Origin: Magallana gigas
Lineage: Eukaryota
Direction of reading: 5' to 3'
Length of the DNA: 64,000 nt
NCBI RefSeq assembly: GCF_963853765.1
Contig: NC_088860.1
Location: 992,001-1,056,000, forward strand
Below, one piece after another: positions 3,601 to 13,587 of the stretch. The notes under the pieces are model-generated. The model did no database searches and had not been told where the DNA came from. It worked only from the letters and a program-made list of their open reading frames with translations. A program made the position numbers and the translations under genes. How positions within the stretch are numbered: the first letter of the stretch is position 1; the number at the start of each line of letters is the position of its first letter.

Positions 3601-6600
3601 TTGTTTCACTAACAATACATTACTTGACTGAAGAGTTGAATTTGTCCCTTCTGGGAACAGAAATAATCGGAATAAATTCACATGTTACAACACCTGACTT
3701 CATTAGTCTAGCAGGCAACTAGGACTCAAAAGTTCAGAGAGCAACAAACCACATCAAAACACCATCTGTTCCTAGAGAGGAATATTTGCTATAGTAAGCA
3801 AGACAGACTGCCGAGTGTCACGTTTTATTGAAATAAAATTGCTGAAAATACATCGACTTGAACTCTGGGTAAATACTTTTGCCTAATTCAGCACCTCTGG
3901 ATGTTATTCTCTTAAAACGTTGGCCAGTGAGGGAAATGTCCAAGATTTTCATTTCACTTATGAGAAATCACTCACTGGTCATGCACTTAAATCAACACCT
4001 AGCAAGACTCGATATGTAGCTTAATAATGTTTTTCCTGTCATGGGGACACTGATAGTAAATAATAAGATATAGTCTATTAGACATTTGATTCTTGCTCCA
4101 TTAAACTACCATATTTCTTTGGCAATATATGGCAAATTACTGTTAACATGTCTCATTATACAATGGCAGTGCATCAGTGATTTTTCTACAGCCAATTTAG
4201 GTCCGAATTTCGGACCTTTCCCCTTGCATGTATCATAGACCCCCCCCCCCCCCCCCCCAAATTTACCCTGTACTTTTTTCCCTCAAAGTTTTTGTTCAAT
4301 TCCCTTCATACACAAAACAGAGAATTATTTGCGAGTTTAAAGAGTAAATGAGAAGAGCACTGAACAATATTATACAATATGCAAAATATGATATTGGCCC
4401 AAATTGTCCAAACATATTAAAAAGTTAAGTTACACACTGAAAAATTACAAATGATAATTTGAGAAAAATGATTGTCGAACGACATAGGAAAGTAACATTT
4501 GACTACTGACAGATATTAAAAACAATACTATTTAGTGAGATCTACATGTATGTTCATTCGGTAAAAAATGACTCCAGGATATTTATGGATCATGTGAAGA
4601 TAAATGCCCAGACTGACATATCCCCTCAGTCAGAGAACTTACAGCGTCCCTATCTTTCACGAAGTAACAGCCACTCGTCCCTTTAGCACTCAGTTCTGGG
4701 CTCACTCCGGTCGCTATGGCCATCTCTATCTCCCATACTAGTTTCTGGAAGTCCGTGTCCCGGGGGAAGTTGTTCCCGTACAGGGTCTCATACTGAGAGC
4801 TGTCCGTGGGGCAGGCTGGTTGGTGGGGGGCGGGGTCATCTTTCTCCACGATCTGGATTTCGTCACTGTCTGTCATTCTCCCCTATGTTATATTTACACT
4901 TTCGTTAAACCGTACCTTTTAGACTGACATCTTTTAACAAGATTAAAAGGTCCTTGTACGTTCAGTCGATGGCCTGATACGTTATCAGAAGCAGAATTCA
5001 CCAGAACACTATGTACATGTAACGTAATGTCGTTTACGTTACAACATGTGTGATTTTGTCAACTACGCACATCCACGAAATGTTAGCTGGACTGCCGAAG
5101 ATGTTGTCTGATTGCGCGGGAAAACAGTGATGCTGCTCGTCTTCTACTTTCACTTTCACGATGCCACCGGGTATTTTTTTTGTTCGTTAGATGCCAGTAT
5201 TTCCTTGTCGCGTGTTCTAAGGAATTTTCAAACTTGTACACTCATTGTCACGTGCAACATAACTACATTTAAATATTTCTAAATCGATAAACACAATTTT
5301 GGTTGTAAGATACGGGGATTTCCGGTACATCCTTGACCCATTTCCTGGTGAATCCGCACAGAAGATTTACACCCCTGCAAATGTTATTGTCATTTAAATT
5401 TTAGATCACGTGTTTTAATTTGACCCTTTCAGTTTCGCAGTAAAAATCGTCCCTCGTGTTCATAGTCTATTTCATAGAATCTAGGTACTTGTAGTCAAAC
5501 ATAAAAAAATTAGAGGTTTATTGATTTTAAACTTTATCTTCATTAACTGGTGGATAAAATGTGTTCTAGAAATAAATGTGACAATACAAAAAAAATAGTT
5601 TTTTTTCTGCTGTTGCAACAATTAAAATGTCTATTAGAGATCCCCCCTAAGGGTTTATTTTCGATCCGCACCTGACCTAATAATAGCATCAATAGTGAAA
5701 CAGACTATACTATTTTATGCAGAATGTTCCTTGAAAATGGCTCGATTTACTAAGTTTTGATACAAAACAGACACCCATTATTTTTTTTAAAAACATGGTA
5801 TTGCACACAACAAGCATCAAACATGGCTATGATTTTATTAAGCAACCCAATGTTTACATTTTCAACCACTCTACACGTGGCTGAACACGAACGATAACTC
5901 TGTTCTGAATATCATCGTTTAATTTAAATAACCGCTAGATGGTGAAATAAAACCTACATCCAACACGGTTTTCATGTTTTAACATAAATCAAAGTAGGAT
6001 ATGATATGAAAAACGACTATTACTTACGTATTTTTAGAATATTATCCGAACACATATACTTCCGCTCGAAAATTCAGAGGAACTGAACAAATCTTCGTGA
6101 AGTCTCGTGAACTTTCATTCGAGCACCTCTGGATTCATTATATACTTAGCAACGATAAAGAAAACATTCCGAACACATTCGCAGGGGTGATTTATCTGAA
6201 CACAGCTTGTTTCCTTCCCTGGCGCTACTATCTCGACACGTTATTGACGTGGCTGTCAGTTTACATACAAAGGGAGGCTACTCTAATTACATGACCAAAT
6301 CTCAAGGGATAGTCTCAAAACTCAAAATAAATGTTGCAATGATTTTAACACAGATATATACAATGAATAGCCACAAAATTAACTATATAAATATGCTGAT
6401 AATTTGACAGAAAAAATGCCGAATTATTAATTATTTAATGTTGGAACAGTTACAATTTTTCTTTAATATGAACAAAAACAAACTGTTTAGGCCACAATTA
6501 AAAATATTTCAGTTTGTCCAAACCCGACCCATGATGACTGGGTGTGGGTAGGTAGGTAGGAAAATTCTTTTTTCTTCTTCAGAATTTGCATGAAGATATT

Positions 6601-12600: not shown

Positions 12601-13587
12601 ACTATATAATTCCTGTTTAATTGTGGTCCATTTTTATATACATGTACCAGTAAACCCATATGGACCATATGTTTTGTATAAATGACAATTTTAGTGAAAT
12701 TGCAAAGGGAAAGAAGAAATATTGATGAACCAGACTGTGATTCAAACCTACGTCCCCTGAATCTGTCAGTACGTGCTCTTGCAACTAAGCTATCTAGCAA
12801 ATCTTAGCAAACCAGTCTAACCATCACATTCCTTTCTCTTTAATGATCTTGGCCCTTACAGATCATCATCCTACATTTCTTCACCTGACAGGTGTTCATC
12901 TGTCAGTTTCAGGGGGTGGTAACATTACATAATATACAGGAAGAGATGACGGACCAGATCAAGATTCATACCACTGCTTCCCTGATTCTCTAGTCAGATG
13001 CTCTACCAAATGAGCTATCTGGCACCGGCTAATATACTGACTGATCAACATTTTGTCCCCAAGTGTTTAGTAAAAGTATTTGGTTAAATATCAATTTTTC
13101 TCTGATCAGGTGTACTACCTGTCAGTTTATTTAACAACTAATTTCAGAACTGATAATGCAAGCATTTTTACCTATGATTCATCAAACATTTGGTTAAAGA
13201 TATTTCAATTTTTTAAATCTTATCAATCTAGGTAATGATTATTCACAAAAAAGCTATCAAGACAGGAATTATACTATATATCTGTACTATAATCACTATT
13301 ACCTTTTCATGGTCTTTTACGAAATAGCTCCCACTGGAGCCCTGATAGATTCTCTCGGGTAAAAACCCCTCCTCTATAGCTTCTTCAGCTTTTCGTATTA
13401 TCTCTTGAAAAGCAGGATCATCGGGAAAATTGTTGTCAAACTGTCCGTATTCCTGTTCCACCCGTGGGGCCAACAGAGGCGAGTTTTCCTCGTTACCCCG
13501 CCCCGTTCGAGTTGGAGATCGCGGTAGATATTCGGATCTGTTGAGATTCGGAGCAAATGTTACGTCTGGTGGTGGGGCATTAGACAT
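620..13587 (-). CDS. PI4K2: Phosphatidylinositol 4-kinase type II, canonical (distal first exon) isoform; 3'-partial, continues beyond left edge
   Basis: Exons 13587-13303, 2979-2779, 998-867, 773-620 with GT/AG ends and consistent phases (0,0,0,1). Spliced peptide reads [19 protein letters not shown]|[15 protein letters not shown]...[39 protein letters not shown]|[16 protein letters not shown]...GLPPK|[11 protein letters not shown]...[14 protein letters not shown], the PI4K2A/B signature with the CCPCC palmitoylation motif. A vs B subtype not assignable. Confidence 0.95.
1150..2412. repeat. Degenerate ~19-bp minisatellite (GTGAGCCTAWAGAAATCAT-like) split by the 1259-2182 element
   Basis: Units at ~1150-1258 and ~2190-2412. 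Confidence 0.6.
1259..2182. mobile_element. Non-autonomous TIR element (GGCC termini, Kolobok-like)
   Basis: ~38-bp imperfect TIRs GGCCAAAAAAAAAA(T)TATTCYTGTTTCCTGTCRCCYGAC. No clean TSD, so the superfamily is tentative. Confidence 0.65.
2701..2811 (-). repeat. 39-bp tandem repeat (x~3) spanning the PI4K2 exon-2 splice donor
   Basis: Units 2811-2773 (exon end + GTAAGG), 2772-2734 (ends GTAAAG) and a degenerate 2733-2701. Confidence 0.85.
4643..4876 (-). CDS. PI4K2: PI4K2 alternative (proximal) coding first exon
   Basis: ATG at 4876; 78 codons ending [44 protein letters not shown], then a phase-0 GTAAGT donor at 4642-4637. Paralogous to the distal exon end ([44 protein letters not shown]) and frame-compatible with the single exon-2 acceptor at 2980. 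Confidence 0.85.
5146..5157 (-). promoter_or_regulatory. IRF/ISRE-type motif GAAAGTGAAAGT upstream of the proximal PI4K2 exon
   Basis: Plus strand ACTTTCACTTTC, ~270 bp upstream of ATG 4876. Motif match only. Confidence 0.5.
5314..5323 (+). promoter_or_regulatory. NF-kB consensus site GGGGATTTCC
   Basis: Exact GGGRNNYYCC match ~440 bp upstream of ATG 4876. Motif match only. Confidence 0.45.
6490..7326. mobile_element. Non-autonomous TIR element (GGCC termini, TTTA/TTAA flanks, Kolobok-like)
   Basis: Imperfect ~40-bp TIRs GGCCAMAATWAAAA...TTTGYCCAAAC; flanks TTTA (6486-6489) and TTAA (7327-7330). Confidence 0.65.
6740..7200. mobile_element. MITE with ~105-bp TIRs, CAC..GTG ends and 2-bp AG flanks (CMC/EnSpm-like), nested in the previous element
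   Basis: 6740-6843 is a near-perfect reverse complement of 7092-7200; AG lies immediately outside both ends. Confidence 0.65.
8759..11189 (-). mobile_element. HINE-like element (outer), interrupted by a related element
   Basis: Head palindrome AGGGTCTTCCGTT-gaa-AACGGAAGACCCT at 11156-11184. Matching 3' subterminal GGGTCTTCCGTT at 8790-8801, hairpin CTCGTTGC-aaa-GCAACGAG at 8770-8788 and terminal CTAG at ~8759. Contains ~35-bp repeats at 8900-9040. Confidence 0.75.
9573..11135 (-). mobile_element. HINE-like element (inner, nested) with ~145-bp/~580-bp internal repeats
   Basis: Head palindrome AAGGTCTTCCGTT-gga-AACGGAAGACCTT at 11105-11133 and an AAT microsatellite. 3' AAGGTCTTCCGTT at 9600-9612, hairpin TTGTTGCTATAGCAACAA at 9581-9598, CTAG at 9573-9576. 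Confidence 0.8.
12715..13028 (-). mobile_element. Degenerate SINE-like element with two tRNA-derived heads
   Basis: Minus strand GATAGCTCATTTGGTAGAGCATCTGACTAG... (13023-12945) and GATAGCTTAGTTGCAAGAGCACGTACTGAC...GGTTTGAATCACAGTCTGG (12797-12725): A/B-box-like, but no intact cloverleaf. Confidence 0.55.

Follow-up and report, generated by a model that had tools for sequence, protein, structure and literature searches.

PI4K2 enzymes make PI4P, a driver of endosomal and Golgi sorting. To our knowledge, only the two vertebrate paralogues have shown how N-terminal signals and an unusual glycine loop set the location and activity of PI4K2. In human PI4K2A the G-loop comprises residues 130–136, with S134 and S137 on the beta-phosphate, I130 and F139 in the adenine pocket and K152 as the catalytic lysine (Zhou 2014, PMC3974213). 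The canonical PI4KII glycine loop is described there as highly conserved among PI4KIIs, and the exchange R129A strongly reduces human PI4K2A activity (PMC3974213). ERQPLL is the AP-3 motif of human PI4K2A (PMC3708732). An earlier reading of the oyster DNA, made from its letters only (the sequence-only reading), had named the loop residues, K152 and the ERQPLL sorting signal in agreement with these papers. As far as the available parts of the sources go, exons 6a and 6e of coq-2 in molluscs, annelids and nematodes are homologous alternative exons that arose by tandem duplication (PMC7434440), and human exons of the same kind have been catalogued (PMC8373072).

We analyzed a window of 64,000 nucleotides from Magallana gigas (NCBI RefSeq assembly GCF_963853765.1, contig NC_088860.1, positions 992,001 to 1,056,000 of the forward strand); positions given below count from its first letter. 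One oyster PI4K2 gene, carried on the minus strand, gives rise to two proteins through two homologous, tandemly duplicated first coding exons, the distal exon 1a and the proximal exon 1b (Table 1). The two exons are paralogous, with 42% identity over 59 aa (E 7e-14), and each has its own ATG and 5’ UTR and ends, at the homologous position, in a GT donor of phase 0. Exon 1a starts with the ATG at 13587, and its final base at 13303 is directly followed by GT. In exon 1b the ATG lies at 4876, three codons downstream of an in-frame TAG at 4885–4883, and the final base at 4643 is followed by GTAAGT. The acceptor common to both is cag/AAA at 2979. The sequence-only reading had proposed this arrangement of two ATG-started paralogous exons with phase-0 donors and a single acceptor, and all its coordinates and sequence claims hold; translation likewise confirmed the canonical loop and ENSPLL that it had assigned to the distal exon, and the altered loop, YETL and lack of a dileucine that it had assigned to the proximal one.

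Table 1. Features of the oyster PI4K2 gene (positions in the window unless stated otherwise)
Feature	Position	Strand	Remarks
Exon 1a 5’ UTR, to cDNA contig limit	13588..13665	-	SRR334217 contig alignment starts at 13665
Exon 1a, coding part	13303..13587	-	285 nt = 95 codons; ENSPLL, helix alpha1, canonical loop
Conserved non-coding block, putative core promoter	6206..6319	-	contains TAATTAGAGTA and GCCACGTCA; at/upstream of 1b cDNA 5’ ends
5’ end of 1b transcripts	6189..6214	-	cDNA contig starts: 6212, 6214
MITE-like transposon, 819 bp	5370..6188	.	interrupts the 1b 5’ UTR in this assembly
1b 5’ UTR, main part	4877..5369	-	runs on into the coding part; cDNAs map 5369-4643, then 2979
Exon 1b, coding part	4643..4876	-	234 nt = 78 codons; YETL, helix alpha1, variant loop; without dileucine
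Common exon 2	2779..2979	-	67 codons; KIIGVFKPK (catalytic Lys), CCPCC palmitoylation motif; cDNA
Common exon 3	867..998	-	cDNA contigs
Common exon 4	620..773	-	cDNA contigs
Five more exons	about 987,857-991,233 on contig; offsets -767 to -4144		before window start; cDNA alignment

The products comprise 432 aa (1a) and 415 aa (1b), and their residues are identical from KIIGVFKPK onward. The product of exon 1a is identical to the N-terminus of the M. gigas protein A0A8W8IZR2, and the 1b isoform corresponds to RefSeq XP_011419797.3. PF00454 (PI3_PI4_kinase) is recorded for the proteins, and they belong to the type II PI 4-kinases: phmmer aligned residues 20–387 to 4HND with an E-value of 1e-162, and matches to the solved PI4K2A and PI4K2B structures range from 1e-154 to 1e-162. 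CCPCC and the catalytic Lys in VFKPK are encoded by exon 2 and are present in both isoforms. When exon 1b was used as query against the 564-Mb genome, the two first exons were the only matches; PI4K2 is single-copy in the oyster genome. A region-restricted protein search with exon 1b returned four oyster proteins only.

Both junctions that the sequence-only reading had put forward for checking were found in assembled cDNA contigs of public, mutually independent runs, 4643->2979 in those of SRR24489153 and SRR5451717 and 13303->2979 in that of SRR334217. Each of these three contigs holds one first exon only, either 1a or 1b. Exon 1a was found in 18 runs from 10 studies, 7 of them recorded as RNA; exon 1b was found in 20 runs, also from 10 studies, none of which is recorded as RNA, and the RNA origin of the exon-1b contigs is a guess. 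The pair has the features of a tandem exon duplication: the exons are homologous, of equal phase, joined to the same splice partner and used singly, and both copies are constrained elsewhere.

The 1b cDNAs have their own 5’ UTR and contain no exon 1a sequence at all. Their start near 6214 lies about 7 kb beyond exon 1a in the direction of transcription, beside the conserved non-coding block. Besides exon 1b, this block is the sole part of the region from 4000 to 6600 that aligns to the exon 1b region of Saccostrea, and it is also present in a three-oyster alignment. These observations fit expression of 1b from an internal promoter. Given the downstream start of the 1b transcripts next to a conserved block, it is most likely promoter choice that decides the isoform.

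The cDNA alignment of the 1b 5’ UTR is interrupted by a gap (6189->5369). An intron was considered at this position and rejected, because the gap lacks GT-AG borders; its inverted termini, the duplicated target and the many copies across the genome mark it as a transposon. The element carries terminal inverted repeats CACCCCTGC(G/A)AATG and a target duplication of 5–6 bp, TAAAT(C). At least 40 full-length copies with 89–99% identity are present in the genome, with 1330 candidates. It is missing from both 1b cDNAs as well as from the genomic contig of a congener, which is contiguous across the site.

The glycine loop encoded by exon 1a follows the canonical pattern P-E-R-I-x-Q-G-S-S-G-S-Y-F. 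In a gap-free loop alignment to 4HND, the 1b loop differs from human PI4K2A by R129L, I130S, Q132K, S134T and S137C and is likewise changed at the equivalent of Y131, while G133, S135, G136, Y138 and F139 are retained. The sequence-only reading had listed S134-to-T and S137-to-C; both are present, but the list was incomplete, since the equivalents of R129, I130, Y131 and Q132 differ too. That it knew of no such arrangement in vertebrate PI4K2 agrees with the sampled vertebrate proteins: none has an L-class loop, all retain PER-I-x-Q-GSSGSYF, and those examined individually carry the dileucine. The first exon spans helix alpha1 and the glycine loop, and 1b therefore brings a different, clade-conserved loop. 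By analogy with the human enzyme, R129L would affect the residue that contacts the membrane and I130S the adenine pocket, and S134T and S137C would change the donors of hydrogen bonds to the beta-phosphate. The L at position 129 could mean reduced activity of 1b, because R129A lowers that of the human enzyme. Since the shared exons supply the catalytic Lys together with the catalytic and activation loops, we would expect 1b not to be dead but to work as a kinase whose ATP and/or membrane-interface properties are altered. The loop swap is predicted to alter nucleotide or membrane handling. For the 1b isoform AlphaFold2 gave a model of low quality (mean pLDDT 67, TM 0.47–0.57 to 4HNE), from which the loop geometry cannot be read.

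Exon 1a also encodes, in the tail, an acidic dileucine match to [DE]xxxL[LI], ENSPLL, and molluscs, nemerteans and one brachiopod share the conserved motif E-x-[ST]-P-L-L. A dileucine was found in 189 of 248 canonical-class proteins versus 4 of 56 L-class proteins, in rows that are not independent of one another. For YE.Phi the respective figures, from rows both redundant and non-independent, are 9/248 and 37/56. Because it is missing from the 1b exons of several bivalves (Dreissena, Mya, Mytilus and Tegillarca, with YETQ in Ostrea), YE.Phi is usual but not universal in the 1b class, judging from these sequences. Exon 1a would accordingly yield the canonical enzyme with an acidic dileucine resembling the AP-3 signal of human PI4K2A, and exon 1b would drop the dileucine and usually add Y-E-x-hydrophobic, a putative adaptor signal of the tyrosine type. 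Different adaptor interfaces would then sort the two isoforms, and the exchange of the first exon would alter targeting.

Exon 1a and exon 1b are both under purifying selection. We obtained dN/dS values of 0.08–0.11 for exon 1b, 0.09 for exon 1a and 0.004 for exon 2 (the latter versus Saccostrea, in which 1a, 1b and exon 2 follow in the same order). Disrupted or neutrally evolving 1b exons in relatives had been named as evidence against the proposal; they are intact in every relative examined, with a dN/dS of about 0.1. Spliced 1b-class proteins were found in further bivalves (Argopecten, Mytilus, Tegillarca, Dreissena, Mya) and in gastropods (Elysia, Physella, Aplysia, Bradybaena, Haliotis, Gigantopelta, Babylonia, Littorina, Nucella, Patella). 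In the tree the mollusc 1b sequences of bivalves and gastropods form one clade with a support of 97/87, and the duplication is therefore older than the split between the two groups. Tandem first exons with homologous donors are also present in the nemertean Lineus (two) and the annelid Capitella (three). Their extra first exons retain GSSGSY, and R129->L is common to molluscs, the Lineus 1b exon and the Capitella 1c exon. A single origin of the extra first exons is a possibility, with a support of 92/76 in this tree of 49 columns. The arrangement is probably mollusc-wide, as sampled in bivalves and gastropods, and older still.

Taken together, we assign a probability of roughly 85% to the explanation that promoter-chosen first exons of one gene swap a sorting signal together with the ATP loop. 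Since no intron precedes the loop in lophotrochozoan exon 1, it could be argued that only the exchange of the N-terminal tail matters and that the loop substitutions are neutral passengers. The arthropod and cnidarian X2 forms, which swap the tail alone and have the loop exon common to both isoforms, agree with this, as does the GSSGSY of the Lineus and Capitella exons. We nevertheless regard it as doubtful: L-S-x-K-G-T-S-G-C-Y-F is fixed across bivalves and gastropods, which is unexpected for a neutral loop, and the L at position 129 is shared beyond the molluscs. Somewhat less likely still is a 1b form that is catalytically weakened or dead and acts as a scaffold or regulator instead of a tuned kinase. 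The loss of R129, the change I130->S in the adenine pocket and the replacement of S137, which hydrogen-bonds the beta-phosphate, by C would suit such a form, but the skeleton G-x-S-G-x-Y-F is retained and T keeps the hydroxyl. T and C are moreover almost invariant in molluscs (GTSGCYF in 34 gathered sequences), as expected for a working nucleotide site, the remaining catalytic residues are all in shared exons, and the dN/dS of the 1b core is 0.11.

Two further alternatives concern how exon 1b is brought into the transcript. A single upstream promoter could serve both isoforms, with splicing making the choice, and assembled contigs cannot prove a transcription start; we consider this very improbable, as two independent 1b cDNAs have no unaligned leader and 5’ ends that differ by 2 nt at most, carry about 500 nt of genome-contiguous sequence 5’ of the ATG in alleles without the transposon, and have the conserved block directly upstream of their ends. 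Hardly credible at all is exon 1b as an internal cassette used together with exon 1a, or as a decaying, mis-annotated duplicate. The cassette derives from the old model K1PPV5 (558 aa), in which 1a, GR, 1b and a further piece are joined to exon 2 by means of an AG that lies in frame, two codons before the 1b ATG, but none of the three cDNA contigs shows this structure and RefSeq has replaced the model. Decay is contradicted by the 1b ORF, which is intact and constrained in all relatives examined.

The gene provides a natural, strongly conserved isoform pair that differs at the phosphate, adenine and membrane contacts named from the crystal structure and in the adaptor signal. Such ready-made variants bear on the contribution of S134, S137 and R129 to activity, and allow one to ask whether a tyrosine-type signal is able to replace a dileucine. 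More tentatively, the locus may represent an ancient lophotrochozoan promoter switch that couples an adaptor code (dileucine to Y-E-x-hydrophobic) to the loop contacting ATP and membrane, using exon duplication where vertebrates used gene duplication. It possibly dates back to the ancestor of molluscs, annelids and nemerteans, and the cysteine of the mollusc loop could perhaps make PI4P synthesis on one compartment respond differently to the nucleotide level or to the redox state.

Both isoforms are already annotated in RefSeq, where M. gigas XP_011419796 (X1, 432 aa) and XP_011419797 (X2, 415 aa) are the same two proteins as described here; an X1/X2 pair is also present for C. angulata, C. 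virginica and Ostrea edulis. These models are automatic, named “2-alpha” or “2-beta” by best hit, and silent on loop and sorting motifs as well as on the duplication of the exon and its age. The function of the two-exon arrangement appears never to have been studied, and a literature search found no paper describing it. The names are misleading, as the oyster proteins are products of one gene and not orthologues of the two vertebrate genes. Vertebrate PI4K2A and PI4K2B resemble the oyster pair in that the kinase body is conserved while the N-terminal regions, which carry the adaptor signals, diverge; they stem, however, from gene duplication, whereas the oyster pair stems from exon duplication. 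In the X2 forms of arthropod and cnidarian PI4K2 (Schistocerca americana, Eurytemora, Exaiptasia), the dileucine tail is likewise lost through an alternative first exon. The tail that takes its place has Y-x-x-hydrophobic in Schistocerca (YEEI) and Eurytemora (YDSI), with none evident in Leptopilina and Exaiptasia. Unlike in the oyster, this swap stops before D-D-P-x-F, so that the isoforms have helix alpha1 and the glycine loop in common. Judged from the available parts of the sources, exons of the coq-2 type resemble PI4K2 1a and 1b in being used singly, in replacing part of the active region of an enzyme and in their long conservation. In contrast to those exons, the duplicated unit of PI4K2 is the first coding exon, which brings along an ATG and apparently a promoter of its own, and would therefore be chosen by transcription start and not by mutually exclusive splicing.

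The single PI4K2 gene (type II phosphatidylinositol 4-kinase), located on the minus strand of the window, gives rise to two transcripts with separate 5' ends, one starting in a distal first exon (1a) and one in a proximal first exon (1b). Five more exons follow past the window start, and an in-frame TAG lies three codons 5' of the exon 1b ATG. Exons 1a and 1b are homologues of each other, with 42% identity across 59 residues (E 7e-14). When exon 1b was used as a query against the 564-Mb genome, only two matches were obtained, namely the two first exons; we are therefore dealing with one gene carrying two first exons.

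Features of the PI4K2 locus in window coordinates
Feature	Position	Strand	Remarks
Exon 1a, coding part	ATG 13587 to 13303	-	95 codons, phase 0, GT next
MITE-like DNA transposon	5370-6188		819 bp; inverted ends CACCCCTGC(G/A)AATG, target duplication TAAAT(C)
Exon 1b, coding part	ATG 4876 to 4643	-	78 codons, phase 0, GTAAGT next
Exon 2	2979-2779	-	pyrimidine-rich cag acceptor; encodes CCPCC
Exon 3	998-867	-	
Exon 4	773-620	-	

At window 2700-2815 the last ~32 nt of exon 2 and its donor are present in about three tandem copies with a period of ~39 nt. The second copy stays in frame and has a GTAAAG donor whose use could add 13 residues; this donor was unused in every cDNA seen. A low-complexity, A/T-rich stretch is located in intron 2 (2076-2116).

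Exon usage was judged from assembled transcripts. A protein search identified P0067, a protein of 415 aa in which exon 1b is read directly into exon 2. Two contigs of 3264 and 1978 nt, each from its own public run, encode it and map to 6214/6212-6189, 5369-4643, 2979-2779, 998-867, 773-620 and five further exons with 97-100% identity. The 432-aa form (P0185) is encoded by a contig of 1443 nt, found in a third run, which maps to 13665-13303 and then from 2979 onward. The sequence-only reading had proposed that both first exons join the shared acceptor at 2979, and both junctions are present in these cDNA contigs. Such short contigs, spread over a genomic distance above 17 kb, can only represent spliced RNA. 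Exon 1b was present in 20 runs from ten studies, none of them recorded as RNA, and exon 1a in 18 runs from ten studies, seven of them recorded as RNA. A cluster look-up showed that RefSeq models both Magallana gigas forms (X1, XP_011419796; X2, XP_011419797.3), which means that the isoforms as such were already on record; X2 (P0294) matches the window's 1b product exactly. The 2012 ab initio model UniProt K1PPV5 (P0299; 558 aa) combines exons 1a and 1b with a further segment from the intron between exons 1b and 2, uses an in-frame AG (~4883) two codons 5' of the 1b ATG and contains two glycine loops. This exon chain is backed by no transcript.

The 1b cDNAs start at 6212/6214, ~7 kb downstream of exon 1a, and no exon 1a sequence was found in them. 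The gap at 6188-5370 in their alignment was ruled out as an intron, as it lacks GT-AG borders and corresponds to the inserted transposon. This element has at least 40 full-length genomic copies (89-99% identity). Its position here is within the 1b 5' UTR, and it is missing from both 1b cDNAs and from the genomic contig of a congener. Its nearest genomic copies are 98-99% identical, which marks the insertion as recent and probably polymorphic. Where an allele lacks the element, exon 1b stands as a genuine first exon, its 5' UTR being ~0.5 kb long. When window 4000-6600 was compared with the Saccostrea exon 1b region, only exon 1b and a ~115-nt block (6206-6319) that takes in the 1b cDNA 5' ends and the sequence just upstream of them could be aligned. 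Conserved block and cDNA ends together look as they would for an internal promoter, making this a putative promoter for 1b. The block contains TAATTAGAGTA and GCCACGTCA (bZIP/CRE-like core), neither of which varies among three oyster genera.

Residue equivalences were taken from a gap-free alignment to the solved human PI4K2A. In the human enzyme R129 contacts the membrane and R129A reduces activity, I130 lines the adenine pocket, and S134 and S137 form hydrogen bonds to the beta-phosphate (Zhou et al. 2014, PMC3974213). Exon 1b replaces all four (R129 to L, I130 to S, S134 to T, S137 to C) as well as Y131 (to A) and Q132 (to K), for which no role is cited, and keeps G133, S135, G136, Y138 and F139. 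The catalytic Lys, catalytic loop and activation loop come from exons common to both isoforms. The 1b loop is class-specific, and ATP or interfacial behaviour would be altered in this isoform. Our preferred reading is an active kinase with tuned properties, not a dead one, since the loop keeps its skeleton and the replacing residues are themselves almost without variation; the AlphaFold model was of too low quality to help.

The human dileucine ERQPLL is an AP-3/BLOC-1 sorting motif (PMC3708732). In its place exon 1a has ENSPLL and exon 1b has no dileucine. Among the gathered sequences, whose rows are not independent, a dileucine was found in 189 of 248 canonical-class proteins versus 4 of 56 with the 1b-type loop (L at the R129 place; L-class), and YE.Phi in 9 of 248 versus 37 of 56. 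This suggests that adaptor recognition differs between the two isoforms. Reading the 1b YETL as a tyrosine motif is a weaker proposal, since several bivalves are without it.

Both first exons are conserved and constrained. Nei-Gojobori dN/dS for exon 1b is 0.11 against the congener (dS 0.37) and 0.08 against Saccostrea; against the latter, exon 1a has 0.09 and exon 2 0.004. Saccostrea also preserves the order: 1a, 12.6 kb, 1b, 3 kb, exon 2. The sequence-only reading would have fallen with a missing junction or with broken or neutrally evolving orthologues; instead, the cDNAs join the exons, dN/dS is ~0.1 and the order is retained.

A profile-free search with the 78 residues of exon 1b against 1.8 billion representatives returned 65 matches, most of which are short ORFs in genomic DNA belonging to this exon class; their final V comes from reading through the GT donor. 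Six further bivalve genera and ten of gastropods have spliced full-length 1b-class proteins, which RefSeq mostly lists as "isoform X2". The class has no dileucine, and YE-x-hydrophobic occurs in two thirds of its sequences; 1a-class proteins keep E-x-S-P-L-L in molluscs, nemerteans and one brachiopod. The N-terminal D-x-[IV]-x-I-[IV]-E-[KR]-[DEQ] (first 12 codons of 1b, window 4840-4876) is conserved in bivalves and many gastropods, in most molluscs as D-x-[IV]-x-I-[IV]-E-K-[DE], and is not conserved in Lineus and Capitella. It loosely fits a SUMO-interaction or beta-strand-addition pattern. In the nemertean Lineus longissimus (L011:1001-7476, local coordinates) exons 1a (1001-1384), 1b (4926-5186) and 2 (at 7273) follow the oyster order, and RefSeq lists X1 and X2. 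The annelid Capitella teleta (L012:3822-11604) has three first exons in tandem, every one of which contains a glycine loop of its own and stops at the homologous GT donor: of these, the first has the canonical loop and is annotated as a separate 127-aa gene, the second carries DDELLL, and the third, with YEEL and PELIKAGSSGSYW, is the sole one used by the annotation. No extra first exon was found in the 1.45-kb first intron of PI4K2 in a chiton, and the L-class loop occurred in none of the vertebrate proteins sampled. In a tree of 49 columns the 1b exons of molluscs group in a single clade (support 97/87), which the extra Lineus and Capitella exons join at 92/76, with long branches; that the lophotrochozoan copies share one origin is for this reason only possible.

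Full-text literature searches gave no paper that deals with alternative first exons, isoforms in molluscs or variant loops in type II PI 4-kinases. X2 isoforms of arthropods and a sea anemone (P0107, P0181, P0155, P0159) differ from the mollusc arrangement: the tail before D-D-P-x-F is swapped, whereas the loop is common to the isoforms. They have lost the dileucine, and Y-x-x-hydrophobic is present in Schistocerca (YEEI) and Eurytemora (YDSI), with none evident in Leptopilina and Exaiptasia. Alternative N-terminal tails of PI4K2 may thus be widespread in animals. Alternative promoters are well known, as is substitution by homologous exons; new here are what is targeted, a lipid kinase's nucleotide loop in combination with an altered sorting signal, and the age of the PI4K2 first-exon swap.
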